Shown: positions 2,265 to 59,400, counted from the stretch's first letter. The stretch is 64,000 nucleotides of DNA from Azolla caroliniana (GCA_043228905.1 JBHGNT010000003.1:13950001-14014000); one strand, 5' to 3'. Notes: generated by a model from the letters alone, not told the origin. Made by a program: numbers and translations.

Positions 2265-3312
2265 TGTCATGAAGATCTGTCACTAGGTGAAGATCGTGAG
2301 GTGGAATCGTCGGGGTTCTAGACCGGAAGGATTCGAAGTTTATGTTAGTTTTAGCAAGAAAGTATTTAAGATAGATTGAGAGAGATTGATATGGCAAGAG
2401 AGAGAGATACTGAAATAAAGATTTAACTCTTGATTTTAGATTTGAGAGAGAAGATACATCAACAATAGGGTTACAAGTCTCTTATTTGATCATCCAAAAA
2501 TTTTACATTAGTCCTTTCATCTTTTTCCTCCCCTCTTTTATAGATGCCCTCATGCATTTGAGGGTACAAGACATGCATAAAATGCATGTTTGCCATTTCG
2601 CGCTCATGTATTACATGTGGTGCATGATAACCATGTCACTCATTTTAGCTCTCATGTATAAGAAGTTACATGTAAAGTTACAATGATAAAAATATAATTC
2701 CAAGAAAATGTGTTGGCTTAGTTAGTGGTAAGCCTATTGACTCTCAATTTGGAGGTGCAAGGTTCAAATCCTTACTTTCCCTCCTTGTGTATATGTATAA
2801 ATATTTATTTATTTATCCTAGCCGTCGGTTGCCGATTGCCAGATGTCGATTACCGTTGGGTTTCCGATTGCCGCCGGCTCACCGGCTCCGTCGTCGGTCC
2901 GGTTTTGGTTGGCCAAAACCGTTGCAAGTAGCCAAGCCACACCCATTCATCCACTAGCTTAGTTCAAATCACCTTGACCTCTCTATGCTCCACACATAGA
3001 CACAAGGATAATAGCTTTTGCCCTACCTTATATATGGTGAGATCCTTATTTATCCTGTCCATGTGGGATATCTCACAATTTTTTTTTTCTCTTTGTCTTT
3101 GCAAACTTCCTACCCACATAAGTTGACACTTAGATGTTTGTTTCTTATGTAGTAAAGTGCATCCGAAAGCTCTTCAAGACCTCCATCTTTTTGTACTAAG
3201 ATATTAAACTTACTTAAAATTAGTATCTTCACTATTATTGTTTTATATGAATCGCACTCGATTTCGTACGTTTTATGTGATTTTCACACCATTCCCGAAA
3301 ATCTTCACGACA
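2265..3312 (-). repeat. 3' LTR of element P
   Basis: Near-identical to 14187-15064 plus 20766-20929; TG..CA ends; adjacent PPT. Confidence 0.93.
2708..2780 (+). ncRNA. tRNA-derived Pol III A-box/B-box cassette in the P LTR (second copy 14628-14695)
   Basis: TGGCTTAG(TTAG)TGGTAAG..CTCTCA..GAGGTGCAAGGTTCAAATCCTT; B box 2761-2771; T-stem AAGG/CCTT. Confidence 0.7.
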
Positions 3313-3859
3313 TCCACCCCCACCAAACCGCACGTCCTCTAGTACGTGCCAAGTACAGAGAGTGTGAGATTTCAGCTATGGTGATCATTAAGATTCCTCC
3401 ACTTCCTCATTCACATCCATCGTAGTATCTTTATCTTCGAGGTGATCGAGGTCAGGATCCTCGTCTTGTCTTTTCTTGAAAACCTTTACTCTTTTTCCCG
3501 CGATGGGTATGGCCAACCTTGATCCAACTAGCTCCGCAAGGTGGTATGTGGCATTGTCGTTGGCACTTATCACCACATACGGTCTGAAACAACTTCTTGC
3601 GAACTTTCTTGTTGTACTGTGTTGATTGTCAAGGCTGCTATCGTAGACCAATACCCAATCGCCTTCTTCGATCTTCTTGGGACGCGCAGTCGATGTGTCT
3701 TGTTGAACCGAATTTTGTTCTTCACTCAGGCTGCCTCCATCATTTGTCGCGCATGTTCTAGATCTACAGGTCTCCTTTCAAGTTGCCTTATCCGTGCTGC
3801 TAATAATTCTTCTCGGCTCATCTCGTTCTCCCATGGTATCGCTACCCATGAGGCGATCG

Positions 3860-4489: not shown

Positions 4490-6899
4490 GATCGTCCTTT
4501 CGATGGGCATCACCGGCTTTTGTCCATACATAAGCTTCGTTGGCATATACCCTATCATCGAGTTGTGTGTCGTTCTGTCGGCCCACAAGGCATAGGGCAA
4601 TAGTCGTGGCCAATTCCCGACTCGACCATTGCATGCTCGTACGATGGCTTTGACGATGGGTCCATGCCCTCGCTCGATCTTCCCATTCGCTTCTGGATTG
4701 TAGGCAGTCTTGAGGGAGAGCTTCATGCCTAGTTGTTCGAAAAGCTCCATTGCTTCGTGTGCGTCCAACTCCCCTCGGTCGACGACTATCTTCCCCACAC
4801 ATCCGTATCGGCAAACAACCTGTTCAAGTAGAAATTTGCAAACAGTTGACGTCGTCTTATTTGTCAAGGCCCGCTGCCCTTCCACTTGATTTGTCAAGTC
4901 TTCTCTTGCCAGCACTAAGTACTTCATTTGTCCCACCCCCATTGGCATTGAGACCAGATCAACCATCCATTTGAAGTGTATGGTGAGCGGGTATGTCGAT
5001 CATAGCTCATCACGATGACGTATGTTGGAATGTACTTGGCAAGTTTCGCATGTGGACACGAAATGGAGTACATCTTTGTACATGCTTGGCCACCAGTACT
5101 TTTCCTTCAACTTTTCAAACGTCGCCCATGTTCCTCTATGATCTGCCCAAGCACTCTCGTGGAATTCGGTCATCAACATCACTTGCTCTTCTTTCTTCAC
5201 CACCACTCGGCGTGGTATTCCCGTCCTTCTTTTTGGGTGTCGCCAAAGGAAGCCTCCCTTCAGGAAGTATCGATAAGCTTTCTTCCAGATTTGTAGAGCC
5301 TCCTCCTTTGTCAACGAAGCATCCATCATCATTGTTCTTCAGAATCTACCGATCAGTAACCACGCTCCTTCATACTCGTCCTCGTTGAAGGCGTGGAGGG
5401 TTAGCGTGTCCTTGTCTTCCACCGATAATCGAGCCATCTTGAAGAAGTCGAGGGTAACGTCTTCATCTTCCAAAACCATGTCACTTTCACTTTCAAATCT
5501 TGCCCTTGACAGCATATCAGCCATGACGTTCTTCTTGCCTACAACGTGGCGGATCTCTGGGCATAAAGACTTGATATAGGCGATCCACCTTAGCATAGCT
5601 AAATCTGGGGTCGCACATCCCAATATCATTCCAAGGATTGGGAGAAAATCTATCTCTATTATCACTTCCGACCCGATCAGGTAATCTTTGTCCGTCTTCA
5701 TTGCCGACACAATACCCCAAAGTTCCTGCTTGACTTGGGCGTATATTTGTTGCCGTTTGCTAAGAAATTTTTCTCTGAACCGGATGGCATACCGCGCATT
5801 ATCTTCTCCTTCTTGGTTGATGACCCACCCGATTCCGGTTGGGCTCGTATCTATAGTCACATAAATCGGCTTTCCTTCGGTATAGTCGGCCTTTCTTAGT
5901 GTTGGAGCTTCAAGAAGTGGTTTCTTTAATCTTCGCATCGCGTTCGTGTGCTCGTCTCGCCATTCGAACTTCATTCTTTTCTTTAGCAATCCATATAAAG
6001 GCTCGGCGACATGGGCGTAGTGTGGAATCCAAATATGGTAAAATGCGCATGCTCCAAGGAACCTTCGAACCTCCGTTTGGTTTACGCAATCTTCTTTCAT
6101 GTCCTGGATCGCATTCACCTTTGATGGCGAAGGCTTCCGGCCGTATGCTCCACATAAGTGACCTACCACCAAGATCTTTGGTTGCCTGAATGCGGATTTT
6201 CTCTCCCGAAAATGTCAAATTCGTGTCTTCGAGCCTTTGGAGCACCTTCTCGCAATCGCGACGAACTTTCTACACCCTTCCTTATCTTTTGATTCATTCT
6301 TCTCTTCATCCGAACATCCTTTCATTTGAATATCACCCAAGAATGGCATCGTGATGTCCGGGATGCAATCCTTTAAGACCTTGTTCATGGCATTCACCAT
6401 ATGAGCCACCGAGTTCGTTGCACCTTGAGGTAAGGTACACATCCACACGAGCCCGATCGGAGTCCTCATGGTTGTAATGTCACGACTGTCAATCGCCAAT
6501 AGGAATTGGTCATATCCGGAGTAGAGATCACCAATGGAGTACATGGACCGGCCCGCAAACGCCTCGGCAAATTCGTCCACGCTGTCGTGTGAATCTTCAC
6601 ACACTATGTAAAAAAAATAATGAAATAATTATTATAGATTAGATTAGTAGCTTACTATAGAAAGATGGATATACTCAAGAGCTTCAAAATGTATTTTACT
6701 ATATACAAAATGGAGAAATACATATCAAGTTATGAGAAAATAAAGTTTAAGAAGATAGGGAAATTAGAACTATCCCACATAGATAGGAAAGTTAAGGCCC
6801 TGGCTATATAAACACCTTGAGCTCCCTAATTTTTCATTTGTGCTAAGAGCACTTTGGCCACTTTGTCTTGATGGATGATGGTGGCCAAATTCCCTAAAT

Positions 6900-7180
6900 C
6901 CGGAAACTGGCCGGTATGCAATCCGGAAACCGGTCGGTATGCAAAACCGGAACCGGCGGCAAGCAAACCGAAATCGGAACCGGCCGGCGAGAAAAACCGG
7001 AACCGGAACGGGTAAGCAAAACCGGAACTGGAACCGGCTAGCAAACTGGAACCGACCGGCAAGCAAAACCGGACCGGAACTGGCAAGCAAACCGGAACCG
7101 GCCGGCAAGCAAAATCGGAACCGGAACCGGCAAGCAAACTGGAACCGACCGGCAAGCAAAATGGAACCGGCTACCGGACG
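6900..7180. repeat. CCGG-rich minisatellite in the N LTRs (longer copy 9910-10325)
   Basis: Imperfect units of CCGGCAAGCAAA(A)CCGGAA; source of many spurious ORFs. Confidence 0.95.
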
Positions 7181-7483
7181 AGGTTGGACGCGGACGGACG
7201 AAAGATTGGATCATGCAACAAACTAAAGTAAAGTGAAGAGAACTAAAGTAAAGGCCATGTGGACACAAGCAACTAAAGGAGTGCATGGAAAAAGTAAAGG
7301 TCATGTGGACAGTCACATGCAACCAAAAGAAAAAGCTAGGCAACTAAAAGTAGAGGCCATGCAACAAAAAGTGGAAAAGTTATGATCAAGGGAGAACTCC
7401 ATATTTATTCCATTTTTTTCTTACACTAGGGCACTCTCCATATTATCTGAATTATATTTTCCTTCTCAACTCCCTTATCTGAG

Positions 7484-7630
7484 GGAAGCCATATCTCTCA
7501 AAAACCCTAAAATTCCCTACGGAAGCCATAACACTCAAAAACCCTAATCTTCACTACGGAAGCCATAATACTCATATAACCTAATCCTAATTTTCCCTAC
7601 GGAAGCCATATCTACCAAAACCCCTAATTT
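7484..7630. repeat. Four ~37-43 bp repeats containing telo-box-like AAACCCTAA in the N LTR (second copy 10638-10783)
   Basis: GGAAGCCATA..AAAACCCTAA..CCCTAC repeated. Confidence 0.85.
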
Positions 7631-7844
7631 TTCTTTTCTATTATTCTTAGTAAATCTAAAACTTCTAAATCCCAATCTTGGGACATATTGTAATTTCTTT
7701 TTCCTTTGTTAATGAAAATTATTAAATTTCTTCTTTCTGTTATTTGTTAAAAATATAAACGCATAAATGTGATTATCCTCTGGTCGAAGGCCTCGGGGTC
7801 CTGCCTCAAGTTCGCGTATCCTCGTCGTATTTTCGCGACATCTT

Positions 7845-7862
7845 TGGTGAACCCGACGTGAA
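7845..7862 (+). promoter_or_regulatory. Primer-binding site complementary to the 3' end of tRNA-Trp
   Basis: TGGTGAACCCGACGTGAA is the reverse complement of the plant tRNA-Trp 3' end TTCACGTCGGGTTCA-CCA. Confidence 0.88.
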
Positions 7863-7885
7863 ACGAGGCAGTAGGAGGATATCTC

Positions 7886-9479
7886 ATGGAGGCATATAAA
7901 CTATACGCGTTCGATCAATGGCTATCATCATTAAAGACCCACCAAAGTGCCATGCATGCTTTCGTTGAGTTCGAGTGTCGCTTTGCACAACTCTCGGAGC
8001 GGGATCAAAGATTGGTGGGGGTGGAAAAATTCCTAATGTTTGTGAAATCGATAGACCGGAAGGAAAGGAATGCCATTGGAGGCATATAAACTATACGAGT
8101 TCGATCAATGGCTATCATCATTAAAGACCCACCAAAGTGCCATGCATGCTTTCGTTGAGTTCGAGTGTCACTTTGCACAACTCTCGGAGCGGGATCAAAG
8201 ATTGGTGGGGGTGGAAAAATTCCTAATGTTTGTGAAATCGATAGACCGGAAGGAAAGGAATGCCATTGGAATCCGACTTGAAGATGACGATGGTGCAAAT
8301 GGCCTCACAGAAGATTGGACGAAAGTGGAAAGAGTATATCGACTTCACGATGAGAGGAAGGCAAGATTCTCATCCGTGACAACACAACGTACTAGGGATG
8401 GTGAAAAAAGGACGGGAAGCAACTACAAACTACCACCTAAAGAAGAAAACTTGAAGAGGGAAGGTTCAACAATACTCGACATAGAAGTCTTGATGGAAGA
8501 GGCATTCGAGAACTTAAAGGCGCAAGTTGAGGCTGAAGAGAAGCTTCAAAGGGAGCAAAAACTGAAGCAAATGATGAGCGAGGAAGTGAAGGCCAAAACT
8601 AACACATGCAAAGAAGAGGGAAGAATAATCGAGGATTGCTCGATTGAGAAGTTCAATGGGTATGAGGCCGATGAATTTGAAGAGATGGCCACAGATAACG
8701 AATTAGAGATAGAGGTGGCTATGGACAACACAATGAAGGAGGATGGTAAGTGTGCCGAGACTTCTTCCCCACTATTTCAAGATATTTTGGCAATGGTAGA
8801 TGGGAACATATCTGTTGGTGGAGAAAGGGCCATCACCGAAGAGACATACCTGAACCAAATAAAGACCCAAGAGATGGAAGGTGGTAACGAGGAAGTGAAG
8901 GTCAATGTTGATATATACGATGAAGAGGTCAAACAAAGCACAATGGTGCATGACAATGGCCAAGTGAGCCAAGTGAAGTCTAAGGGTATTCCGCGAGATA
9001 TGATTCCATGCTCCGACTCAAAAGGGGATTCTAGTGTGAAGATCAAACAAACGATGGTCAACTGTCACACGAGAGCATACCATGAAAAAGGTGGATGTGG
9101 GAAACATGAAATGTGGTCATCTGAGATTTTGAAAGTGAGCGTGGACTTGAATCATGGGCTACAAGGAGTAGTTAAAGTCAATGTTCAAGTGAGGTCTAAT
9201 GAAGACAAACCTAGATTGATGAAAGAAGGAAGACTAAATTGCGTTAACCATGGCAATGGTCGAAATGAAGGTAGCACTTGCATGATGCATAAAGGGTTAT
9301 GCTTCGGGAAGGCAGAAGAGGACATGAAAACCAAATATGGCAATGCAAAGCTCAGACAAAGGATTTGGTGGTTTGGATGGTCTCCATGGTTATGGTGGAA
9401 AGAATGGTCATGGTGGCATTGGAAGAAGAAAGATAAGGAACCAACGAGTTGGTTCAAGGTCAATCTCTATCATAGATAG
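7886..9479 (+). pseudogene. Truncated Gag-like protein of element N (~467 aa before a 190-bp frameshifting duplication)
   Basis: The N-terminus SAMHAFVEFE..FVKSID..LEDDDGANGLTEDW aligns by eye to P Gag SASRVYDEFE..FLKAVD..LEDDTQAKGLVADW. It is followed by an acidic/coiled-coil region and a W-rich tail. Confidence 0.8.
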
Positions 9480-11880
9480 TTAGCTTATGAAGGAAAGAAA
9501 ATATTACGACAAGGATTAAAGATTTCAACTAGGAGGATACAACTCAATAACACAATTGGCACATACCGGTGGATGTGCAGGTTTGGTGGGGGTGAATGTC
9601 GTGTGAATCTTCACACACAATGTAAAAAAATAATGAAATAATTATTATAGATTAGATTAGTATCTTACTATAGAAAGATAGATATACTCATGAGCTTCAA
9701 AACGTATTTTACTATATACAAAATGGAGAAATACATATCAAGTTATGAGAAAATAAAGTTTGATTAGAGAAATTAGAACTATCCCACATAGATAGGAAAG
9801 TTAAGGCCATGGCTATATAAACACCTTGAGCTCCCTCATTTTTCATTTGTGCTAAGAGCACTTTGGCCACTTTGTCTTGATGGATGATGGTGGCCAAATT
9901 CCCCAAATTCGGAAACCGGCCAGTATGCAATCCGGAAACCGGCCGGTATGCAAAACCAGAACCGGCCGGCAAGCAAACCGGAATCGGAACCGGCCGGCAA
10001 GCAAAACCGGAACCGGAACGGGTATGCAAACCGGCCGGTAAGCAAAACTGGAAATCGGTCGGCAAGCAAAATTGGAACCGGAACGGGTATGCAAACCAGA
10101 AACCGGTTGGCAAGCAAAACCGGAAACCGGCCGATAAGCAAAACCAGAACAGGCCGGCAAGCAAAACCGGAACCGGAACCGGCAAGCAAACTGGAACCGG
10201 CCGGCAAGCAAAACCGGAAACCGGCTGGTAAGCAAAACCGGAACCGGCAAGCAAACCGAAAACGGCCGGCAAGCAAAATCGGAACCGGAACCGACCGGCA
10301 AGCAAAATGGAACCGGCTACCGGACGAGGTTGGACGCGGACGGACGAAAGATTGGATCATGCAACAAACTAAAGTAAAGTGAAGAGAACTAAAGTAAAGG
10401 CCATGTGGACACAAGCAACTAAAGAAGGGAGTGCATGGAAAAAGTAAAGGTCATGTGGACAGTCACATGCAACCAAAAGAAAAAGCTAGGCAACTAAAAG
10501 TAGAGGCCATGCAACAAAAAGTGGAAAGGCTATGATCAAGGGAGAACTCCATATTTATTCCATTTTTTTTCCTACACTAGGACTCACTCTCCATATTATC
10601 TTAATTTTCTTGTCCTTCTCAACGCCCTTATCTTAGGGAAGCCATAACTCTCATAAACCCTAAAATTCCCTACGGAAGCCATAACACTCAAAAACCCTAA
10701 TCTTCCCTACGGAAGCTATAATACTCATATAACCTAATCCTAATCTTCCCTACGGAAGCCATATCTCTCAAAACCCCTAATTTTTCTTTTCTATTAATCT
10801 TAGTAAACCTAAAAGTTCTAAATCCCAATCTTGGGACATATTGTAATTTCTTTTTCCTTTGTTAATGAAAATTATTAAATTTCTTCTTTCTGTTAATTGT
10901 TAAAAATATAAACGCACAAATGTGATTATCCTCTGGTCGGAGGCCCCGGGGTCTTGCCTCAAAGTTCACGTATCCTCGTTGTATTTTCGCGACAACGCTC
11001 GGACCGATTCCAGCATTTCTAATTGTCACCTTGTTGACGGGTTGAAGATCTTTGATGAATCACAATCATCCATTTCTCTTCGGCACCGTGAACCACCTAT
11101 TAGAGTAAGGAGCATTCAACAGTTCTAGAATACCCATATTCACTTTCTCCTTTAATAGCTCGATCAGCTTCGGAAGGTGCGCTCTTGGAACTGGTATCGG
11201 TTTCAAATTCCAAGGCACATGTGGCACCGTGAAGATCACCATCAACTCTATAATCTTTGGGTCGGCACATCCGATTTCCTGGGCAGAGAACGTGAAGGCT
11301 TTCCCATGCCTTTCAAGCATTTCACGAAACTTTCGCTCCTCTTCAGGGAGGAGGAAATCCTCCTTTCCAACTCATAGCTTTCTTTTCGTCTCTTTAGTGA
11401 AGACATGACCTATTGTCTTTGGATCCCTTAAGCTTGGATCATTAGCGACTTCCTTCATCTTTTGCCAGCTATCTTCCGGTAGCGGAACCACAACTGGCTT
11501 GATCTTCTTATCCACCATTTTATATTTTGTGTTGACTTCAGCTTCCTCCATCAGGATGCCACGATAGTATTCATCGTTGATAGCGTACATGTTGACGGAG
11601 TTAACCGAAATCACACATTGGTCGTGAAGATAGCTCAAGTCCACGACGTCCTCAATTTCGCCGATGGTGTCGTTAAATGAGGCTTCTTCCATAATATGAG
11701 TCATGAACTCTTCTTCTTCTATTATGTTTTCTTCTTTCAGCATCTTCGTGAATTCTTGTATCCGACGCTTGTCCTTCTTGTCAGGTAGTACTAGTTTACA
11801 TGCGCCACTAGGTGTGACACATGTTGCTTCTCCTCGCAATCCACGTGCTCTATTTTCTTGTGGGAACTTGTGATTGCTCG

Positions 11881-14114: not shown

Positions 14115-15064
14115 CTCCAAGTTTTGGTCGATCCTCTACTTGATCCTTCCTACTGCCTCTTTCACATCGGGTTCACCACTTAATTATGTCGTGAAGATCC
14201 GTCACTAGGCACGGATCGTGAGGCGGAACCGTTGGGGTTCTGGACCGGAAGGATTCGAAGTTTATGTTAGTTTTAGCAAGAAAGTATTTAAGATAGATTG
14301 AGAGAGATTGATATGGCAAGAGAGAGATACTCAAAAAAAGATTTAACTCTTGATTTTAGATTTGAGAGAGAAGATACATCAACAATAGGGTTACAAGTCT
14401 CTTATTTGATCATCCAAAAATTTTACATTAGTCCTTTCATCTTTTTCCTCCCCTCTTTTATAGATGCCCTCATGCATTTGAGGGTACAAGACATGCATAA
14501 AATTCATGTTTGCCATTTCGCGCTCATGTATTACATGTGGTGCATGATAACCATGTCACTCATTTTAGCTCTCATGTATGAGAATTTACATGTAAAGTTA
14601 CAATGATAAAAATATAATTCCAAGAAAATGTGTTGGCTTAGTGTTAACCTTATTGACTCTCAACTTGGAGGTACAAGGTTCAAATCCTTACTTTCTCTCC
14701 TTGTATATATGTACAAATATTTGTTTATTTATTTATCCATCTAGTCGCCGGATGTCGGTTACCATCCGGTCGTCGGATACCGTTTGCAGCCGGCTCACCG
14801 GCTCTGTCGCCGGTCCGGTTTTGGTTGGCCAAAACCGTTGCAAGTAGCCAAGCCACACCCATTTATCCAATAGCTTAGTTCAGGTCACCTTGACCTCTCT
14901 ATGCTCCACACATAAATACAAAGATAATAGCTTTTGCCCTACCTTATATATGATGAGATCCTTATTTGTCCTATCTATGTGGGATATCTCACAAATTTAT
15001 TTTTCTCTTTGTCTTTGCCAACTTCCTACCCACATAAGTTGACACTTAGGTATTTGTTTCTTAT

Positions 15065-20760: not shown

Positions 20761-20929
20761 CTTATGTAGTAAAGTGCATCCGAAAGCTCTTTAAGACCTC
20801 CATCTTTTTGTTCTAAGATATTAAACTTACTTAAAATTAGTATCTTCATTATTATTGTTTTATATGAATCACACTCGATTTCGTACGTTTTATGTGATTT
20901 TCACACCATTGCTGAAAATCTTCACAATA

Positions 20930-21177
20930 TCGCTTGATAAAACTCTATCGGCCTCCGAACTCCTTTTCAGCGTGGGTATATACCAGACTTCATTCAAAGT
21001 GATAGTATTGCCATCTGGCAATTGGATGGAGAACTCTCTGATCCTTGCGATTGCGCACTCTTGCCCGTTGCCTAGTCGAATTGTGTCGCTGGCACGTGAA
21101 ATGTGACACCGGAGTCCAGTAGCCAGGTTTGTGTGTCTTGCACACTATCTAGGACTTCTTCGATCATCAAGTCCTCT
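20930..21177 (-). pseudogene. Host Copia H, protease fragment joined to the pre-RT linker
   Basis: The minus strand reads WLLDSGVTFH and RLGNGQEC..EVWYIPTLKRS, then RRPIEFYQ, which continues into PGLDFVNY at 2264. Confidence 0.75.
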
Positions 21178-21199
21178 TGTCATAGACATATGCCACAAA

Positions 21200-21272
21200 G
21201 GAAGGTAGGGATCGAACCCAAGACCTCATGGTCTCTATTGGGCAAACCCTACCACTTAAGCTACATATGCAT
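21200..21272 (-). ncRNA. tRNA-derived A/B-box cassette in the LTR of A (second copy 32580-32648)
   Basis: Minus strand: TAGCTTAAGTGGTAG..GAGGTCTTGGGTTCGATCCCTA. Confidence 0.78.
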
Positions 21273-21434
21273 CCTTGTATTTAATTCAACTTCATATAGT
21301 GTAGATTGAAGATGGGAAGTTCCTAGCTTACATATATTCTCATTCTCTAGCTTGCATGCATCCTCATGCATTCTCTATTGCATGCATCCTCATGCACTCT
21401 ATTTCTAGCTGGCTTACATACCCCTACCCTCTTG

Positions 21435-21588
21435 TATAAATACTCATGTGCACCTTGATTCTAATAAAGGTGAACAACACAAGTTACGGATTCTATAAGT
21501 TGAGTTCTTGTTCTTTTCCTCTCTCTTGTTCTCCAGTCTTATCTTCGTTCTACTCTATTATACTTGTCCATGATAATTTGTTCACCTT
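21435..21588 (+). promoter_or_regulatory. LTR TATA box, predicted transcript start and self-priming PBS
   Basis: TATAAATA at 21435; AAGGTGAACAA 21467-21477 is complementary to TTGTTCACCTT 21578-21588, just past the LTR end. Confidence 0.85.
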
Positions 21589-22630: not shown

Positions 22631-23389
22631 TAGGAGCCATGCCACTGGACGCTTCCCGTTACTCACCTTCTCCATCCTCCTACAAGTCTGAACCGCCATT
22701 AGGAGGGTTTTCTTTGCAAGTAAGTCTTTGTTTTGGTTTGTTGAGAATCAAGCTCAACTTGGTCTAGTGTGTGAACTAGTGTCAACATGAGCAGTATTTA
22801 TCTGGCTCGGAACCCGGTGTTCCACACGCGGACAAAGCACATCGAAGTGCACTATCACTTCATCCGAGAGTGCGTTCTAGCTAGCGATGTCGACCTACAA
22901 CACATTAGCACCAATCTTCAAACGGCTGACATCTTCACTAAGGCCTTAGGAGCCAACAAGCTATGGCAATTCATGACCGATCTCGGATTGACGATCCCTG
23001 ACCTGCCAAAGCTTGAGGGGGAGTACTGAAGATATTACGCAATAACGAGTGGATTACGCAACCACGCAACAAAGCCGCGAAGAATGACGCAAGCCGAAGC
23101 ACAGACTTCGTAACTACGCACAACACAAGCTGGATCACGGATTCCGCAACTCCGCATAAAGCGAGTCGACGCGGACTCCGGAACGTGAGTTGAAGCGGAT
23201 TTCGGATACCGTCTGAAACCGACCCGACTTGAGCTTGAGGGGGCATGTTGAGAATCAAGCTCAACTTGGTCTAGTGTGTGAACTCACCTTGAGAGTGAAG
23301 AGACACTCCAACGGTCAAGAGTCACCATTATGTCACCACTTTGTATTCTAGCATTTAGTATGAGTCATAGAATCATATTCTATGACACA

Positions 23390-24105: not shown

Positions 24106-24258
24106 ACACATAACTTATGAGCTTTCACATTCCCCATGCTCCATGAGTCTTGTAGTTAATGAAGAGAGAGGGTGACTACATAAAGCACCCTCCTCCCACC
24201 TTGTATAATGTTGAGTCTTTCTCCTTTGTCAATATACTTTTACCTTGCGTATTCTCTG

Positions 24259-24295
<37 letters not shown>

Positions 24296-32515: not shown

Positions 32516-32942
32516 ACCGGTCGCGGGTGTTAGGAGGCGACCTTAGAGGGAGGATAATGTCATAGACATATGCCACAAAGGGTAGGGATTGAACCCAAGA
32601 CCTCATGGTCTCTATTGAGCAAACCCTACCACTTGAGCTACATGTGCATCCTTATATTTAAGGATTCATAAATAACTTCATATAGTGTAGATTGAACATT
32701 GGAAGTTCCTAGCTTACATGCATCCTCATGCATTCTCTATTGCGTGCATCCTCATGCACTCTATTTCTAGCTAGATTACATACCCCTACCCTCTTGTATA
32801 AATACTCATGTGCACCTTGATTCTAATCAAGGTGAACAACACAAGTTACAGATTCTATAAGTTGAGTTCTTGTTCTTTTCCTCTCTCTTGTTCTCCAATC
32901 TTATCTTCATTCTACTCTATTATACTTGTCTGTGACACCTCT

Positions 32943-35690: not shown

Positions 35691-35778
35691 TGCCTGTCAT
35701 GATATAGCGTGGTATGGCTTCAAAAGGATTTGAACCCATGACCTTATGTCACATAGGTTGAGGTCCTACCATTAAGCT

Positions 35779-38700
35779 TGTTAAGGATTAGGTAATTAAT
35801 TAAGGAATAATTATTTCCTAATTATGTGATTAAGTTAAGCGATTACGTAGCGGAAGATTAAGTGATAAGTGTGTGTATGTGTGCGTGAGAGGAAGAGAGA
35901 GAGAAGTACACTTATGAACTCAAAACAAGATGGGGGATGATAAAGTATATTAAAAGGTAAATATCATCAACTATCATCAAAATACAAAAATACCTTCAAT
36001 GAGGTATATATAGGTTTCATGTGCAAGGGTGCACATGTGCTAGGAGAATATAGGTACAACGTGTAAGTCCTATATTAAATGAGCATGAGGTGGTGAATCT
36101 ACAATGTATCCCACTCAAGTACAAAATCCTATTTAAGGCTTTATGGTCAACACACTAACAAGATTCTATCTAGGTAACTACTAAGTTGCATGTGTTGACT
36201 AACTAACTAAACTAAGTTGAGCTTGATCTCTCAACACCCCCCTCAAGCTCAAGTGTGAGGCGTCCGGCTTCCGATGTCGGCTTCTGTGCAGCTTCCGTCC
36301 GGCCTTCGGCTTTCCTCGCCGTGGCAATCTCAGTTCCTCCCCCTCAAGCCGATGACGAAGGCTTGTAGTGTGTGGGTGAAGGTCGAGTACTTCCACCCAT
36401 CATGGGTGACGAGCCGCTTTGGTGGAGCTCTTGGGCTCTTGTTCGGCTGCTACCTTCATCGTGAAGGCGTAATGATGGGCCATATACTCGTTGTAGCCGA
36501 GCCGAGTGACGGGATTCTTCTCTCTAGAAGAGCGTCGAAGTTTTTCGCTCGCCGATGTGAGCGCCTTCTTTACTCCGGGTGTACGCATGATGGGTACACC
36601 AAATTCACTGTCTACTGAGGGAGCCGATCCATCCGAATCATTGTCGTCGGGGTGGTCAACTTCGTATCCGGGCATCTTACCTTTGCCTTTGTCCAAGTTC
36701 ATACTTGGTCGCGACGTGCTTGGGTCGTGTGGGGGCTCTTGTGGCCCACTAGGCTTTGTCGTAATCGGACTTTCTTCGTTCATATGCGTGAGTTGATCTT
36801 CGGCTTCTACCTCTTGTTCAGCGTAATCCACATCGAGTGTAGTCCGAGTCGAAGAGGTGTCTGGTGCGTACCATGATGCGTACTCGTCGAAGACTATGTC
36901 TCGACCTACGCAAACTTCTCGCGTCGACGGTTTGTAGCACTTGTACGCCTTCTTCTCGGACACGTATCCTACGAGGATACATTTCTCTGACTTCGCGTCG
37001 GGCTTCAGTCGTTGTTTGTTCAGGATGCATACATTCGCAATGCTTCCGAACACTCTGAGATGCGACAGGATCGGCTTCCTTCCGATGAGGAGCTCGTAGG
37101 GAGTTAGCTCATGGACTCCATTGGTGGTGCACCAGTTCATGAGATAGACGGTTGTGGATGCCGCTTCGGCCCAATAGAAATTCGGCATGTGCTTCTCATG
37201 CATCATGGCGCGTGCTACCTCAAGTATTTGCCGATTCTTCCTTTCGGCGACTCCATTTTGTTGGGGTGTGTGTCGGCATGAGAATTCTCTACGAATGCCT
37301 CCACTTTGGAGGTAGGAGATGAATTCTTCGGAGAAGTACTCCTTGCCTCCATCCGATCGTAGGCATCGAATGTGCCGACCGGTTTCTTTTTCGACTTGCC
37401 CCTTGAGCTTTTGGAAGTGGGAGAACACTTCGCTCTTCTTCTTCATCGGGTAGATCCACGCGTATTGCGAGTAGTCGTCGATGAAGGTGACGTAGAATCG
37501 GCATCCGCCGATCGTCGGCGTTTGAGCTGGTACCCATACATCCGAGTGTATGACGTCGAGGAGGCCTTTGCTTGCAGAGCTCTCCTTCGGGAATGGGAGT
37601 CGATGTTGTTTGCCGAGTTAACACGCTTCGCATACTCGGTCGACTCGTTTCGACTCGAATGTCGGAAGTCCGATGATGACTCCCTTGGTTTGCATCGCTC
37701 GAAGCCGTTGGAGGTTTATGTAGTCGATTCTCTTGTGCCACAACTCGATGCTTGTCTCGGTTTTGAGACCTTTACCGTACATTGTTGATTTCACCTCGTT
37801 CGAATCGAGGATGAACATTCGGCCTTCTCTCCACCCCTTAGCTACGACTCGACCATCTTTCTCGATGAAGCATCCTTCTTTGTTGAAGCGGACTTGCATG
37901 CCTTGCTCCACGATATGGAGAACCAAAACCAAATTCTTTGTTATTGTGGGCACGTGCAAGACATTCTTGATGCAAGTTTGGAAGCTCCCCCTTCTTGGAA
38001 GCTCCCCCTTCTTTCAAAGGTTCCTCAATGGCTTCCTCTTCTACCGCCACAACCTCTTCCTCAACCACCGTCTGAATTCGAGAAGAACATTTGTCCTTAT
38101 GGTGCCTTGCTTTTGGTTCGGACGTGGTTTTCTTCGACCAATAACATTGATTGGAGGTCGAAGAATGAAGGAGGGTTTTCTCTCGCCAAGATTTCCGTTC
38201 GTAGTGGATCAAATCGTTGTGTGAGGCCGCCCAAGCATACTTGAACCATCTCGTCTTCGTCGACGTTTATGTTGATGGAGCCAAGTGAGTCACAAATGCT
38301 CTTGATTTTGGTTGTGTAGTCTGACACGGACATGTCTTTTTGCCGAATGTTATTCAACTCTTGCCGGAGTTAAAGTTTGCGGGCGGTCGTGTTGGCGGCG
38401 AACATTTCCTTTAAGTTCTCCCACGCCTCTTTAGGCGTCTTGGCATCTCGAATGTGGCTAAGCATATGGTCGTGGACACATGTTGCCAAGCAATACATTA
38501 CCCGACTCGCTCCTTGCTCCCACGTTGGGTAGTTGGCGTTTGTGTTATCGGGCTTTTTCTTGAGTGCATCGTTGATGTAGATCCAATACCCTTGGCCAAC
38601 GAGGTATTGGGTCATCTTGTACTCCCAAGATGAATAATTGCTCCGGTCTAGCTTTTCGCTAGGGAGCGAGTTACCCATTTGTGTGTTCATGTTGTTTTGT

Positions 38701-39321
38701 GTCTTCCATGTTGGCTCTTCTTTCTTCGATCACGTACTTGTGCTATGTAGCGGCACTACGGTAACGGATGGCCGGAATTTGTCGTCAGCGTTTTGAACAC
38801 ACAATCACGAAGTCGGGTGGGCTTAGTGGATTTTCTAAACCGCATGCTCTGATACCATGTTAAGGATTAGGTAATTAATTAAGGAATAATTATTACCTAA
38901 TTATGTGATTAAGTTAAGCGATTGCGTAGTAGAAGATTAAGTGATAAGTGCGTGTATGTGTGCGTGAGAGGAAGCGAGAGAGAGAGAGAAGTACACTTAT
39001 GAACTCAAAACAAGATGGGGGATGATAAAGTATATTAAAAGGTAAATATCATCAACTATCATCAAAATACAAAAATACCTTCAATGAGGTATATATAGGT
39101 TTCATGTGCAAGGGTGCACATGTGCTAGGAGAATATAGGTACAACGTGTAAGTCCTATATTAAATGAGCATGGAGTGGTGGATCTACAATATATCCCACT
39201 CAAGTACAAAATCCTATTTAAGGCTTTATGGTCAACACACTAACAAGATTCTATCTAGGTAACTACTAAGTTACATGTGTTGACTAACTAACTAAACTAA
39301 GTTGAGCTTGATCTCTCAACA
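35779..39321 (-). mobile_element. Internally deleted Copia C3 (gag plus integrase only)
   Basis: LTRs 35779-36236 and 38858-39321; TSD AAGCT/AAGTT; iMet PBS 38846-38857; gag 38690-38040; INT 37959-36400; PR core and RT/RH missing. Confidence 0.92.
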
Positions 39322-39556
39322 AAGTTATATATTGTAATACAAAAAATATTTTTTCCATTTATTATTTCACTTAGGACATCCATGTATATTCTAGATTTCT
39401 CTAAAACATTCTAAAAATGTCAAGAGTACTCCTAAGCATACTGTAAAAAGAGGCACATGGCATTATTGAGAACCAATTCGGTTCAATGCCAGTGTTAAGC
39501 CTTCTAGTTATTCTTGTATATTCTCTTCATATAATATAATATATCATTTGTTATCA

Positions 39557-48800: not shown

Positions 48801-50033
48801 GGACCATTATGGAGATAGCTGGGATCTAAACAATGATGGGATGGCAAAAAACAGTGAGCCTACCTGTTTATATTTTCTCAAACGTCTTCCATCAGCTGTC
48901 TCAATGATAAATTCTGTAGAAAAAATGTTTGCCAACTTTGCTCCATAACCATTTCTTCCACCGGTTGTCTTCTTCTGTGTATCATCATAGTTGCTACTTG
49001 TCAGAAGATGCCCAAATATCATCTCAGGGACATACACCCCTTCTTCTCCATGAATCTCAACTGGGACACCATCTCCATTGTTGTATACACTTATGAAGTT
49101 TTGTTCTACATTTATCTCCACTTTCACAGAATCCATGGAAGGATCTCTTTGTTTGTTGTCTGCTGCATTAACCAGGATCTCATCAAATATTTTATACAAC
49201 CCTGGCACATAGGTTATATTCCGACAAACCAATGTCTGATCTTCATAAACCCAAAGAGCCTGAGTGTGCTTCTCTATGGAACCAACATAAGTATCAGGTC
49301 TGAGCAAAATATGTTCCAGCTGCGTCTTCTTCTGATACATTTCCTCGATAGTCTTTTCCTGGTTGCCTCCAGCAACATTAGAAACGGAGCTGGACTGAAG
49401 AGGCTTGACCGAAGACTTCTTGGCCGCATTTTCACTGGAAGCTTTGGATTTGGAGGCCTGTACATAAGCAGGAAATATCCAAATATTAAAGAGAAAGGGA
49501 TATTAACGACATCTATTAAATTCTGATGATATACATATGTGATCTACAACGATTCAGAAAATATAAAAGATCTCCATGAAAATGGCAGGAAGGAAAAGCG
49601 CGTGTAGGAACATGTGGAGGGAAAAAACACATTGCATTTACTGCAATGGAAAAAAACATATAGAAAGACCAAACGAAATCAAGGAAAGACAACGCACGAT
49701 GAGACCATCGAGGAAATTATAAAAATCAAGCCAAAAGTGCGCAAAAATGGGAGGGCTGGAATGTTGTCTGCCGGGAAGAAACGCAAAAACTTTGGGTGGA
49801 ACAGGGGCATATCCAAAGTGAAATCGAAAGAAGGTTCTCTCTTGTGAGAGAGAGAGAGAGAGAGAGAGCGCGAGAGAGAACATGCCTAAGTTGTAACGTT
49901 GAGGTAGAAGGCGTGTCCAATAAGAAGGAAAAACTGGCAAAGGAAGCCAGGAAAAAACTGCGAGTGTAAGAAAGATTAAAGCGCTAACCTTCTTCTTGGG
50001 GAGGATGTCCACGTTTTCCCGGTCAGTTTCCAT
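42857..50033 (-). CDS. TOP2: DNA topoisomerase II (type IIA), 21 predicted exons
   Basis: Motifs [79 protein letters not shown] and catalytic ASGRY. GT-AG exons traced in frame at approx. 50033-49989, 49457-48864, 48770-48478, 48343-48277, 48197-47927, 47830-47631, 47536-47327, 47247-47133, 47058-46948, 46853-46689, 46615-46430, 46351-46196, 46117-45984, 45912-45743, 45635-45447, 45365-45179, 45110-44632, 44518-44391, 44284-44197, 44086-44014, 43623-42857. Confidence 0.97.
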
Positions 50034-50507: not shown

Positions 50508-50620
50508 TGTTAAGTATGTATAGTAGGGAGTTTAGTATAATGTTAAGGTATAGTCTATAATAGGGAGTTTAGTATATTCTATACCTTAGCATTATATTAA
50601 ACTCCCTACTATACTTAACA
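50508..50620. repeat. Fold-back inverted repeat upstream of TOP2
   Basis: 50518-50553 pairs with 50579-50614 (36 bp, 2 mismatches). Confidence 0.9.
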
Positions 50621-54702: not shown

Positions 54703-54800
54703 TGTCACGGACATAGACGAGGGCAAGGACAAGTAGGCAAGCTCAATATTAAGAAAGAGAGAAAGATAGATATATAGATAGAGAGGAGCATGGACAAGAG

Positions 54801-54844
<44 letters not shown>

Positions 54845-56430
54845 CAAAAGAGTGAGAACTAAATTATGCTTCCGTAACTGGTGTTGTTCACCTTGATTGT
54901 AATCAAGGTACACCGAAGTATTTATACAAGAATGTGGTGGTATGCATGTAAGCTAGGAAACTTCTAGAGAATGCATGGAAACTTCTAGAGAGTGCATGTC
55001 TATGCATTTTCTAGAAGTTTCTTGAAAGTTCTAGTGATTAACTTATAATGTAATAAGTTGAAACTTATACAATACAATAATGCATAGATGGAATGTAGCT
55101 CAATCGGTAAGGTTTCCCAATAAGACCAAGAGGTCATGGGTTCAACCCCCTACATTCCATCGTGTCTATGACATTATCCTCCCTCTAAGGCTACCTCCCG
55201 GGACTTGCGGTTGGCTTGTGTGGGTATCGTTGATGAAAATTGCGAATGACCTTCAGAGCATTTTGTAAATGTGTAATTGGTTCCCATGTGGCGTCCGAAA
55301 TGGGGTACCCTTTCCATAAGACCAAATATTGGAGCTGTCGATGACGATATCGAGAGTCGAGGATTTGGTCAACCTCATATTCTTCGCCCGTCGACAATTC
55401 CACAGGTGGCGGTGGAGGAGGGTGTCATCTTGGAATTCGAGAAGGATGGTAGAGTTCGAGGAGGGAAACGTGAAAGACATCATGAATCCTGAATGTTGGA
55501 GGAAGTGCTAACCGGAAGGCGACTGGGTTGATCCACTCGATGACATGAAAGGGGCCTAATATTTTGTAGTTCAATTTTGCACAAGGACATGTGGTGGCGA
55601 TGTGACGACATAACAACCAAACCATGTCCCTGATTGCAAACGTCGGTGCAGCTAAGCGATGTCGGTTTGCTTGATCTTTATAGTGGTCACTAGCAACACG
55701 GAGCTCCAAGGAGAGGTCACGATGGACATCGTGTAAAGCACGGGCACGCGTCTCTGCCGAAGGATTGACTGAAGTTGCAGGTATGGAAATGCTTAAACGA
55801 GGGTGAAATCCATAGTTTGCAAAGAAGGGGGAAACCTTAGTCGAAACATGGATACTATTATTGTAAGCAAATTCCGCCATTGCAAGGAAGTCCACCCAAT
55901 CCTCCTGTTGGTAACTCACGGTACACCGAAGGTATTGTTCGAGGATTTGGTTGACTCGCTCCGTTTGTCCATCAGTTTGAGGATGGTATACTGAGGACAA
56001 GTTGATAGAAGTCTCAAATGTTTGTAGAATTCGTTGCCAAAAGTGGGAAATGAACTGAGAACCTCGATCAGAGGTGATATCCTTAGGTAAGCCATGTAAT
56101 CGAACAAGATTTTTAAGAAAAAGATCAGCAGTCTCTTCCCCGGAAATGGTTTTGGAACATGGAACAAAGTGAGCCATCTTCGAAAACTGATCGACAATGA
56201 CTAGCATCGTGTCATGTCCACCAACTAGAGGGAGGTCGGTGATAAAGTCCATGGATAGAGAGACCCATGGTCGACGTGGAATGGGGAGCGGGTTAAGAAG
56301 ACCATATGGCCGATGGTGAGGCGTTTTGGACCGAGCACATACATCACATGTCTTGATAAATTCCTTGACGAATTTCCAAGGTTGGGGCCACCAAAACCCT
56401 CGAGATAGCAATTCTAGGGTTTTCGTAACA
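54703..56430 (-). mobile_element. 3' part of Tcn1-like chromovirus D: integrase, chromodomain, PPT and 3' LTR
   Basis: LTR 54703-55173; PPT identical to that of A; chromodomain 55191-55403 (YEVDQIL..YLVLWKGY..TWEP); rve in 55425-56430. Confidence 0.92.
55088..55161 (+). ncRNA. tRNA-derived A/B-box cassette in the D LTR
   Basis: TAGCTCAATCGGTAAG..GAGGTCATGGGTTCAACCCCC, enclosed by the 12-bp inverted repeat GATGGAATGTAG/CTACATTCCATC. Confidence 0.8.
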
Positions 56431-59400
56431 AATATCCTTTGTGTGGCCTCACTTCTTGCAATATGCACAAAAGAGGTTTGGTTTCTTTGAGTCGCGGTCA
56501 AGAGTGTCAATGGATTGCATACATGTCCCAATGAGCTTGACATTCGGAGTTTTGGTGAACTCAGGTTTATTGTGGTATTTCTTAGAAGTCCTATGGTACC
56601 GAAGTACAATGTTGACCGTTTCCTCGAAAGTTGTGGGGTCGTTGTCATGGACAATCCAATGGTAATCCCCATTGGGAATACCATTAAAAAAACAAGCGAA
56701 AAACAAGTCTTGATTTTTGGATCTGGGTCCGAGCATGATGCACATAATACTCGAGAGAGGTAAATGGCTTGCTTGACAACGTGAGCATGTTTTGCGCTTG
56801 TTCGGTTTGAGAAGGTAGCTACAAGAACTGTTTCTAAAAAACATCGACGAAAGCTTCCCAAGTTGTGGGTAAGTTCTTTGTAGTCTCTAGGCTGTGCCAC
56901 CAAGTGGCAGCTCGGCCACCTAACTCACGACCAACATAACCAATTTTTATAGCATCGGGCTTGGGATGGAGCTCAAAGTGAGACTCCCAACGACCAAGCC
57001 AAGTGCTAATGGCCTCCTCGATTCTTTCTTTCTTATCTCCCTTGAATGGCGTGACTACGAAAGAAGGTTCACCTTCTTTCTTGAACTCAATAGTCAATTC
57101 TTGGAATTTCTTTTCCAAAGCCATATTGGTTTGCATCATTTCGGCCAATTGATTCAAGGTAGTAGTGAGCAATTGCTTAATAGTGATCTTAGCTTATGTG
57201 CGAGGTTTGGATTGGAGTTGAGAGGTCTCGGATGGAGAGATCACTCCAACTGTGTTCAAAACTTGTTCCATGATGCAAGCTATGGGTATGCAATATAAAT
57301 AAGGAAGTTTAGAAAATACACAAGCAAAATGAATGCTTGAAATTTTGATTGGAAGAACTTTATCCAAGAAAGCATTTCACGTCTTTACCCCTCTAGACAT
57401 ATGAGATGTGATTCGAGATCCGATAACTATGGTAACACTATGGTATTTTAAAAACAAACATATCAAAGATGTCTTTCTCGAATCTCTATCTTGAATAATC
57501 ATGGCAGCTCCCCGAGGCTCAACCATGGTTCCAGCATCAATGTAATTTCCTAGTTAGCCTTGTATTAAAATGCCAACTCAACATGTATTGATATGGTCGA
57601 GAAAGTGTATTGCGTGAAAAAACAAGCTCACTCGCAAGTAATATTCTAGTCTTGCAAGTAACAAGAAAATGTTATGACAAAAACGATAAAATAAGGCACT
57701 ACCCATAAGAGTTAAGCACTGACGAAAACAAGGGTAAAAAACCCCATGTGCTACCTACTAAAAAAAATGTCCCAAATAAATGGATGGTGCGAGGTATGCA
57801 CATATACATCCCAATATGGTGGTTGTAATTTGCACAATTGTGACATAAGCCACAAATTGATACAAATGGTAGTGGTGTTGTGCGCAAAGATGTTGTACTT
57901 AAATTTATGAGTAAAACATCAATAGTGGAACTCATGTGTTTTTAGACGAGTTCTAAGGCTCGATTACATGAGTTAAACCTAGAGACCACTTTGGAAAAAA
58001 TGTTCAAAAAGCAGCATGATGCCCACTCAATATGAACAAATAGTCTACATGAATCATTACACCATTAAACATACGTAAATAGTGTAGATGAACTTAAAAT
58101 AAGGGTAAGAAAGAGAGTTAATTGTGAGTGGGTAAATGACAATTATGAGAAAATCATCAAAAAGTGAAAAGACAATTTGTGTAATTAAAAAATAAGTAGA
58201 ATAATATAATCAATTAGGTGTATGAAACATTAAGCATGCCATAAGGTAAGAAACCCTAGGGTAGTCAACATGCACCTCCTCAAGACCACCACATCCCATA
58301 GAATCGGCCAAGTGATGGCTCAATAGATAGTAGAGTGGCATAGGTAGTGTCGAGACTCGTGGGTAGGAGATAGAGTGAGAGCGATAGCGATAGCGAAAGA
58401 GAGAGGGTGTGTGTGTGTGCGTGAGAGAGAGTGAGAGAGATAAGACTTGAAATAGAAATGAGATCATTTATATTATGATGAAACAAGATTACAATGAGAT
58501 TATAAGGGCTAAAGACTGGTGTTGAACCGAACGAGTTGAAATGAATGTATGGACACTTATTTATAGATCCTTATGGAGTATTCTAGAATGTTCTAGAATA
58601 TTTTAGATTTTTATTATAAGAAACATAATCATGAAATATTAAAGGATGTTCTAGAATATTCTAATATCTCGTAATAACTAAAAATATAATTATTATAATC
58701 ACACAACATATATGTTATTTCAATGGTTAAGGGTTCAACACATAGACCAATAAGTCGTGGATTCGATTCTTTATAAGCCAAAATGTTGTCTTCATGACAG
58801 GTAGGCGACATACACCTCGTCAATGCCACAACATCCCATAGAATCGGTCAAATGATGGCTCAATAAAGGGAAGAGTGGCATATGCAACATCATATGGAAA
58901 AGGGCCATGAGGTGAGCATGTGCGATTAGGGCAAACACACTCGACCTGATGCACAAGAATAATTATTATTGTAAAAGATAGCTCAAGAGAGAGGAGAGTG
59001 GGAGATACATCGCAATATGCAAAAGGGCCATGAGTTGAGCATGTGCGATTAGTGGAAACACGCTCGGCCTGATGCACAATAATAATTAAAATCGTAGCAT
59101 GGTAGAAAGAAGAAAGAAAGAAAAGAAAAAGTAATACAAATTTAATTCAACCAAGAAGAACACGTCATAGAAAAGAAGAGAGAGATCAAGAAAGAAGAAT
59201 ATCGGGTAAAGAATGATGTTTTGATCCTATGAAGAGCATGACGAGCCTTGTTAGATCCCCATTGCTCACACGTAAAAAACATCAAAACAACAAAAAAAAT
59301 TGTTAGTAAATGCTCTGATACCACTGTTAAGAGTCTATTACTAATCAATAGACCAAAATAAAGTAAAAAGAAGGAAATAGATTGGATAGAAGAACCCGTT

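Follow-up and report, generated by a model that had tools for sequence, protein, structure and literature searches.

Antisense tRNA-gene relics in the long terminal repeats of fern Ty3/gypsy retrotransposons: candidate TFIIIC and RNA polymerase III sites in Azolla caroliniana

Results

The seven tRNA-like modules and their host elements

The window, the whole stretch of 64,000 nucleotides (nt) of Azolla caroliniana DNA that was analysed (GCA_043228905.1, JBHGNT010000003.1:13950001-14014000), is plant nuclear DNA that consists mostly of nested long terminal repeat (LTR) retrotransposons, as seen from self-BLAST, Pfam scans and the reading of junctions. Seven LTR copies of Ty3/gypsy elements in this window carry a module that derives from a tRNA gene, and this module is the subject of the present analysis. 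In all seven copies an A box (TAGCTCAAnnGGTA or a variant) is followed by the variable-loop sequence AGGTC and then by a B box (GGTTCRAnnCC), as recognised by eye and by alignment. When the 64-kb window is scanned, with the filters off, with profile R1, a sequence-only profile of the 77-nt module built from 24 modules, exactly seven sites are found, scoring from 55.3 to 25.7 bits, and the next best match scores 7.8 bits. These are the seven A-box/B-box sites listed in a preliminary description of this DNA, and only those. The antisense orientation given there for every copy is also in agreement with the strands of the host elements, which are the - strand for the elements P and D and for a solo LTR, and the + strand for element A and for the host of the fifth module (B-host), where gag follows the LTR.

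Element P is a non-chromovirus Ty3/gypsy element on the - strand, without a chromodomain, in which the ORF/Pfam scan identifies open reading frames (ORFs) for reverse transcriptase (RT), RNase H and integrase (IN). Its 3' LTR (2265..3308, - strand, 1044 nt), delimited by self-BLAST repeats and ORFs, has a U3 region beginning at about 3307 on the - strand behind the purine tract GGGGGTGGATG, and a TATA box (TATAAAAG) at 2542-2535. The module of this LTR (2708..2784, + strand, R1 score 35.5 bits) is antisense to P and lies about 530 nt into the LTR, with the A box (TGGCTTAGTTAGTGG) at 2714-2728 and the B box (GGTTCAAATCC) at 2761-2771. The 5' LTR of P (14187..15064, - strand) is split at 15064/15065 by a copia element (15065-20760, + strand; self-BLAST and Pfam) and resumes at 20761-20925; in the self-BLAST comparison, 2265-3148 of the 3' LTR is paired with 14187-15064, and 3144-3308 with 20761-20925. 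The A box of its module (14628..14699, + strand, 37.2 bits) is damaged by a 5-nt deletion.

Element A is of the chromovirus type, lies on the + strand, contains a nested copia element (22783-29399) and is flanked by the target duplication CCTCT (21173-21177 and 32938-32942). Its 5' LTR (21178..21575, + strand) runs from TGTCATAG to CCATGATA and has the TATA box TATAAATA at 21435-21442, and its 3' LTR (32558..32937, + strand), which lies just behind the polypurine tract AGAGGGAGGATAA, has TATAAATA at 32797-32804. Both LTRs carry the module on the - strand, antisense to A, at 21197..21271 (50.3 bits; the 3' end is about 20 nt from the 5' terminus of the LTR) and at 32576..32648 (45.3 bits). In chromovirus D the 3' LTR (54703..55173, - strand), with TATAAATA at 54926-54919, is preceded by the chromodomain coding region (about 55420-55240) and by AGAGGGAGGATAA; its antisense module (55088..55162, + strand, 55.3 bits) is the most tRNA-like copy, having a 7-bp acceptor stem. 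The chromodomain of A is lost via an in-frame-looking deletion, by which ...YHPSR joins AFHQRYPHKP directly (32470-32515), whereas D retains a full chromodomain (55420-55240).

The 5' LTR of B-host, which is of the chromovirus type (+ strand), opens with TGTCATGATATAGCG at 35695, as aligned with the solo LTR and with the related locus L030, and its first part (35695..35778) ends at a copia insertion that does not belong to the feature (35779..39321, - strand, with an SH3_retrovirus domain; junctions read). The LTR resumes at 39327 and extends to about 39790, after which gag-like sequence is found. The module in this LTR (35716..35778, - strand, 25.7 bits) includes the B box and the greater part of the A box, with its 5' end at 39322-39335, beyond the copia insertion; it was excluded from the training of R1 and is still found, with an E value of 5e-7. 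The repeat pair 35779-36236/38858-39321, at the site listed as B in the preliminary description, is the pair of copia LTRs, with the target duplication AAGCT/AAGTT. This copia element is about 3.5 kb long and internally deleted, with LTRs that are 96.5% identical, and its insertion in the module, being a single event, is too little to suggest targeting. The solo LTR (58348..58799, - strand) belongs to a chromovirus family akin to B-host and L030, has TATAAATA at 58565-58558 and is flanked by the target duplication CTACC (58804-58800 and 58347-58343). The boxes of its antisense module (58712..58779, + strand, 37.7 bits) are degenerate. This LTR is embedded in a tandem array of units of about 123 nt (58260-58342, 58800-59095), with the same unit of about 85 nt on both sides.

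The coding capacity of P, A and D comprises gag, RT, RNase H and IN, to which the relatives of D add a chromodomain. The internal regions of A and D are about 79% identical in self-BLAST, as expected for related families, and B-host and the solo LTR are also related. Because A-D and B-host-solo are related pairs, the window holds three independent lineages, not five. The modules had been assigned to dissimilar LTR families, and P is indeed distinct, but four of the five families share their LTR architecture and ancestry, and the independence was therefore overstated. The occurrence of the module in both a non-chromovirus (P) and chromoviruses is fully in agreement with the present assignment.

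Position of the module in U3

In A, D, B-host and the solo LTR the module is at the extreme 5' edge of U3: the LTR opens with TGTCAT right behind the polypurine tract (AGAGGGAGGATAA in A and D), and the tRNA-like 3' end is found 14-25 nt inside the LTR start. These four LTRs have the same order of features, being TGTCA, the module, an AT-rich stretch, TTCTAGAA repeats and CATGCA motifs, TATAAATA, a hairpin, a (CT)n tract and the terminal TGACA. P is the exception, with its module located mid-LTR, and no similarity of its promoter region to the other LTRs of the window is detectable.

The distances between A box and TATA box that were reported earlier reproduce to the base (172 and 172 in P, 172 and 157 in A, 170 in D, 151 in the solo LTR and 115 in B-host). 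The similar distance that had been noted is not the constrained feature when more families are considered, as the distance from the B box to the TATA box spans 165-256 nt across these; the similarity within the window is due to the length of U3. The constant feature in the chromovirus clade is the location of the module at the 5' terminus of U3, 0-45 nt from its end and antisense without exception. With the module at this edge, the copy in the 5' LTR is at the outer border of the element and faces outward, and the copy in the 3' LTR is turned towards the polypurine tract and the region that codes for the chromodomain.

Other motifs are also found in these U3 regions. The TTCTAGAA repeats resemble heat-shock elements (nGAAnnTTCn) and the CATGCA motifs are RY-like; both are present at 54960-55050, 21300-21420, 39380-39420 and 58590-58680, and in loci L003-L030. 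Together with TTCTAGA, present in 8/9 families, these motifs suggest regulation of RNA polymerase II (Pol II) transcription of the stress or seed type.

Conservation of the boxes and loss of the cloverleaf

In the alignment of the 24 modules, which come from about 10 families, the invariant or nearly invariant columns are G53, T54, T55, C56, A58 and C61 of the B box, G18, G19 and A21 of the A box, and the AGGTC sequence. The sequence features of a type-2 promoter of RNA polymerase III (Pol III), taken as a TRGCNNAGTGG-like A box and a GGTTCGANNCC B box 30-60 nt apart on one strand, are present: the B box is exact or one mismatch away from GGTTCGANNCC in all families, and the B box follows the TGG of the A box at a distance of 35-48 nt.

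The expectation that the boxes are more conserved than the surrounding U3 is borne out for the B box, and less strictly for the A box, by the sharing of 8-mers and by segment identities. The 8-mer test covers U3, from the LTR start to the TATA box, of nine family representatives, with one mismatch allowed. Only three kinds of 8-mer are shared by at least 8/9 families, namely the LTR terminus TGTCATAA (9/9), a TTCTAGA group (8/9) and the reverse-complement B box TCGAACCC (8/9), as compared with 0.1 such 8-mers per run in shuffled U3. The identities between F1 (D-like) and F2 (A-like) are 0.74 for the LTR end, 0.67 for the module, 0.53 for mid-U3 and 0.86 for the TATA-R core, and within the F1 subfamilies the module (0.88) is also more conserved than mid-U3 (0.80). 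When the LTR of P is compared with a second P-type LTR, of locus L083, essentially the sole shared sequence is the B-box island AGGATTyGAACCTTGyACCTCCA. Judged by BLAST coverage between family LTRs, the module is no more alignable than mid-U3; this test was replaced by the 8-mer and segment tests because the TTCTAGAA repeats chain into the alignments.

The module derives from a tRNA gene of which the promoter boxes are kept and the cloverleaf is lost. The modules had been described as not being working tRNAs, and this is in agreement with ARAGORN, which predicts 0 genes, and with Rfam, which finds nothing at the gathering score. The D-like copies reach 25.2 bits (D itself) and 27.8 bits with the Rfam tRNA model, for which the threshold is 29, and for the modules of P, A and the solo LTR there is no tRNA match in the 201-nt Rfam scans. 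In the Rfam small-region scan of the P 3' module, the sole match is the tRNA-like mascRNA model, at 17.6 bits. Relaxing ARAGORN to 85% gives 13 hits, 3 of which are at modules, and provides no discrimination. In the 24-module alignment, cloverleaf pairing is not maintained, being observed in 51.5% of the cells and in 51.2% in shuffles. In the anticodon helix 12-27% of the cells form pairs, and this low pairing, like the ARAGORN and Rfam results, is not that of a functional tRNA gene. T-stem pairing and covariation are not above those of shuffles; of the T-stem that was earlier considered to be retained, the inner 3 bp, being part of the B box, are kept and the rest of the stem is not. The presence of the boxes without the cloverleaf fits a promoter constraint at the level of DNA, as in the heads of short interspersed elements (SINEs), and not a structured RNA.

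Distribution of the module among related elements

The integrase ORF of D identifies protein P0001, which is 91% identical and has the IN-SH3-chromodomain arrangement, and a scan of metagenome contigs with P0001 provides 80 loci. Those from one ENA study (ERZ10343xx to ERZ10344xx), with IN sequences that are 59-100% identical and with high coverage, evidently stem from this fern or from one closely related to it. The LTR start of these loci consists of the polypurine tract, TGTCA, the reverse-complement B box within 0-45 nt, and then the reverse-complement A box. R1 matches 21 of these loci, each on the - strand directly after the IN-chromodomain gene, representing about nine families, between which the identity of the module is only 40-50%. 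In relatives that are at most 58% identical, from moss-associated, soil and fungal metagenomes, the junction of the polypurine tract with TGTCAC is kept and the module is absent.

Some loci deviate from this pattern. In L017 the B box is doubled. In L102 (2350-2470; 66% IN identity, from another metagenome sample) the 5' end of U3 has three to four B-box-like repeats in reverse complement (CTCGAAC), and an A box is absent. L007 retains the B box only, and the related loci L052, L024 and L021 are without a recognisable module. The module is also absent in the distant P-like loci L099 and L100 and in the chromovirus-like loci L001, L002, L101 and L103. A B-box-like sequence, GGGGATCGAACCC, occurs in L001 (9515-9545; a distant chromovirus relative, 56% identical) in the 3' untranslated region, before the polypurine tract; it could have arisen by chance, or could point to a route of entry into U3 via a shift of the polypurine tract.

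The second P-type LTR (L083, 1 to about 640) has a P-like U5 and lies within an RNase H region that is also P-like. Only the R1 profile recovered it, as BLAST of the P LTR against all loci gives no match; most P relatives sat on contigs too short to reach the LTR. The module is found, then, in two unrelated gypsy lineages of one host and is absent from their moss, fungal and other relatives. Module identity is weakly correlated with IN identity (rho 0.17, 93/2000 permutations), and since the families radiate in a star-like manner (about 76% IN identity), this test cannot decide between one and several acquisitions.

Priming of the host elements

The 2-13 nt past the 5' LTR (TTGTTCACCTT) of the chromoviruses are complementary to AAGGTGAACAA, which starts 32 nt after the first T of TATAAATA. 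In A, the self-primer AAGGTGAACAA is at about 21467-21477 and the complementary primer-binding site (PBS) at about 21578-21588. The complement of self-primer and PBS is 11 nt long in A of the window and in L005, L016, L025 and L010, and 8 nt in L071; in L010 there is a compensatory double change, AAGGCGAACAA being paired with TTGTTCGCCTT. The sequences of A, D and their relatives indicate self-priming of the Tf1 type, with the transcript predicted to start at the self-primer. The best protein matches include vertebrate sushi-like, fungal and moss-metagenome elements (44-60% identity), and the affinity to the Tf1/sushi/Tcn1 group, taken from these best hits, is a putative one. Fern clades such as Galahad and Mordred have been described (PMC2864245). 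Among plant chromoviruses, self-priming has been described only in the Tcn1 clade of mosses and club-mosses (Neumann et al. 2019), and a self-priming fern chromovirus clade may merit a report of its own.

Between the PBS region of P (TGGTGAACCCGATGTG) and the 3' end of its module there is no match, and P may be tRNA-primed. As the chromoviruses self-prime, their module cannot represent a primer-tRNA copy like that of HIV-1 (human immunodeficiency virus type 1). The possibility of a U3 copy of the primer tRNA of this type was rejected, in view of both the self-priming and the mismatch in P.

Other features of the window

An element nested in P (6583-10994) has LTR-like repeats of about 1.3 kb (6583-7840 and 9597-10994) that are about 90% identical and full of sub-repeats of about 25 nt. 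Also present in it are a tandem duplication of 190 nt (7887-8266) and a 469-residue ORF (8070-9479) for which Pfam gives no match. On the - strand, ORF fragments at 44540-45133 and 48807-49340, in which a topoisomerase IV/gyrase A C-terminal domain and an HATPase_c domain are recognised, suggest exons of a host DNA topoisomerase II gene between the transposon nests. An intact PPR-DYW ORF is present at 61791-63989, the closest named relatives of which are from Adiantum (65-66%) and Ceratopteris (62%). A near-perfect inverted repeat of 85 nt (50523-50609), which is matched on both strands by Rfam mir-3047 (34 and 30 bits, threshold 53, E 0.0055), is probably a hairpin like that of miniature inverted-repeat transposable elements and not a miRNA gene.

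Discussion

Comparison with known systems

Pol III modules in LTRs are known only from the miniature, non-autonomous elements Cassandra and Helenus, in which they are thought to transcribe the element itself. Helenus (TRIMp3; Kojima 2024, PMC10886601) has a tRNA-derived sequence in the LTRs of TRIMs (terminal-repeat retrotransposons in miniature), with Selaginella as the only plant report, and the same study mentions that 'not a few' Repbase LTRs hold tRNA-like pieces. The fern elements are like Helenus in having a tRNA-derived sequence in the LTR, in which the A and B boxes are kept and tRNA function is lost, and in their 5-bp target duplications (in the plant elements). Helenus is non-autonomous, with a length of 311-1263 bp, and its tRNA-like part is proposed to be its own Pol III promoter, whereas the fern elements have autonomous gag-pol coding regions and a TATA-box Pol II promoter in the same LTR, and their module is common to a chromovirus clade and a non-chromovirus. 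They are neither short nor non-coding, and in 7/7 window copies and 21/21 locus copies the module is antisense, with the TATA box and the self-primer downstream; being antisense, it cannot drive the element's own RNA as in Helenus.

Cassandra TRIMs likewise keep a Pol III promoter of small-RNA-gene origin inside plant LTRs. Unlike the fern module, this is a type-1 promoter of a 5S gene, present in the sense orientation in a non-autonomous TRIM, with a conserved terminator, and for the fern module there is no Rfam 5S match either at the gathering score or at E values up to 10. The HIV-1 U3-R region, with a sequence like the tRNA3Lys gene, is another example of a tRNA-gene-like sequence embedded in U3. 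The HIV-1 sequence matches the primer tRNA, which distinguishes it from the module of the self-priming fern chromoviruses and from that of P. The 11-nt self-primer complement and the C-terminal IN-SH3-chromodomain arrangement of A, D and their relatives are as in the Tf1/sushi and Tcn1-type elements, and to our knowledge no tRNA-like U3 module is known for this group. Full-text literature searches gave no antisense, clade-wide tRNA-derived module in the LTRs of autonomous plant Ty3/gypsy elements, in line with the preliminary description, which knew of no earlier account.

The B box, with or without an A box, is also the feature of tRNA genes acting as boundaries (tDNA), of extra-TFIIIC (ETC) and chromosome-organizing clamp (COC) boundaries and of the mouse B2 SINE boundaries, which act via TFIIIC regardless of tRNA function. 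The B-box-only repeats of L102 resemble ETC sites. Those boundaries are host loci and SINEs that are proven by chromatin immunoprecipitation and genetics in yeast and mammals, whereas the likeness of the fern module to them is one of sequence only. A module that is backward in autonomous elements having their own Pol II promoter must do something else than transcribe the element, or nothing.

A candidate TFIIIC/Pol III site

It is about an even call that the module, a tRNA-gene relic with a type-2 Pol III promoter in the U3 of these fern Ty3/gypsy elements, is kept by selection as a TFIIIC/Pol III site. A tRNA gene would have become part of U3 and would have been retained for its promoter boxes, tRNA function being dropped. 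The action would most likely be at the level of DNA, where the B box, as a high-affinity TFIIIC site aided by the weaker A box, would bind TFIIIC. The bound TFIIIC could mark a boundary in the chromatin and so shield the Pol II promoter further downstream, with its heat-shock-element-like repeats and TATA box; in another outcome, Pol III would be recruited, making a short outward or antisense transcript. Plant tRNA genes have A+T-rich upstream elements bearing CAA. The 5' flank of the module, in the tRNA sense, is 64-82% A+T, often with CAA, which is a point in favour of Pol III use. The duplication of the B box in L017 and the B-box-only repeats of L102 fit a TFIIIC site as the functional unit, and we infer that a TFIIIC-only, ETC-like boundary would fit the L102 repeats at least as well as transcription does.

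Several observations weigh against this interpretation. No Pol III terminator of T4+ is conserved, the first being found 57-137 nt downstream or being absent within 160 nt. In several families the A box departs in part from the canonical form, GG and A21 being kept and TRGC often being lost. The B-box core GGTTCGAACC is short and nearly palindromic, such that another DNA-binding factor could be its reader. The invariance seen in the 24-module alignment is partly circular because the modules were cut out by a B-box pattern, a selection bias that is avoided by the R1 scans of the window and the loci and by the 8-mer test. The families are, moreover, paralogues in one or two genomes, and part of the conservation is shared ancestry. 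Yeast tRNA genes can repress nearby Pol II promoters, which is of no obvious benefit to an element. Finally, the proposed occupancy by TFIIIC and Pol III is deduced from the boxes themselves.

In a more far-reaching version, which must be regarded as possible but doubtful, two unrelated lineages keep a portable TFIIIC/Pol III module at the LTR border, obtained by independent gain or by LTR exchange, that would act as a chromatin barrier or outward Pol III unit and guard the Pol II promoter of the element against silencing from adjacent sequence in transposon nests. If this were true, a tRNA gene would have been turned by retrotransposons into a device that counters silencing.

Alternative explanations

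It is also conceivable, though unlikely, that the module is a neutral passenger: an ancestral LTR would have taken up a tRNA gene or SINE head on a single occasion, with mere inheritance afterwards, the apparent conservation being due to descent and to module-free LTRs that were not sampled. This would be in agreement with the shared LTR architecture and ancestry of four of the five window families, with the decay of the cloverleaf, with the lack of a conserved terminator and with the loci in which no module, or only its B box, is recognised (L052, L024 and L021; L007). It does not account well for a B box that is invariant across families in which U3 is otherwise unalignable, being among the three motifs shared by at least 8/9 of them, nor for the conservation of the module above that of mid-U3, nor for P-type LTRs that have just the B-box island in common. 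The duplicated B-box copies of L017 and L102 and the presence of the module in a second, unrelated gypsy lineage also argue against it.

Rather improbable is the explanation that the conserved sequence is a Pol II cis-element, such as a site for a transcription factor of a U3 enhancer, or a signal for integration or replication, such as an integrase attachment site, which merely resembles a B box. In its favour are the shortness and the palindromic nature of the core TTCGAA, its location in families F5 and F6 in the first 20 nt of the LTR, inside a terminal inverted repeat (TGTCAAGATTCGAACTCTTGACA), and the other conserved Pol II motifs that U3 bears, the TTCTAGAA repeats and CATGCA. The distance of the motif to the LTR terminus, however, is not fixed (9 to about 65 nt, and about 530 nt in P), which is ill-suited to an attachment site. 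The motif is, furthermore, accompanied by an A-box-like element at tRNA spacing and by AGGTC, and what the D-like family has at this place is, over its whole length, an almost complete tRNA.

A role at the level of RNA is very unlikely. The complement of the module in the 3' U3 would then pair with a cellular tRNA or tRNA fragment, either for strand transfer as in HIV-1 or as a target or decoy of tRNA-derived small RNA. There is a precedent, as the tRNA3Lys-gene-like sequence of HIV-1 U3-R reportedly promotes minus-strand transfer (Piekna-Przybylska et al. 2010). The module being always antisense, the element transcript carries its complement, and it adjoins the polypurine tract within the transcribed 3' U3. 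The chromovirus clade, however, uses its own transcript and not a tRNA as primer, the PBS region of P (TGGTGAACCCGATGTG) is unlike its own module, covariation and pairing are not above chance, and the conserved parts are the loop-forming boxes only, with no long complementarity.

That copies of an ordinary tRNA-derived SINE entered the LTRs independently, SINE insertion into an LTR having been proposed for the origin of Helenus (Kojima, PMC10886601), is extremely improbable: in SINE heads, too, the A and B boxes persist and the cloverleaf decays, but the fern module has the same place and orientation in 21 further loci of about nine families, its presence in both LTRs of P and of A means that it predates the last transposition of each element, the 0-45 nt between the tRNA 3' end and the LTR terminus leave no room for a SINE body or tail, and neither target-site duplications flanking the modules nor, in the R1 scan, free-standing module copies are found in the window. 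By place, strand, spacing and absent duplications, the motif is not an ordinary SINE with its own duplication and tail, a finding that would have refuted the initial proposal.

Significance for fern genomes

Relics such as these modules can inflate the counts of tRNA pseudogenes in fern annotations. The idea of a TFIIIC/Pol III site is directly testable, as the B box is a small and well-understood target for mutation. If the module is bound by TFIIIC, each newly inserted copy would equip its place of integration with a boundary or Pol III site, and chromatin domains, the spread of methylation and antisense RNA would be affected across a large, repeat-rich fern genome. The fern elements would then be a clear case of transposons co-opting the architecture of host tRNA genes.

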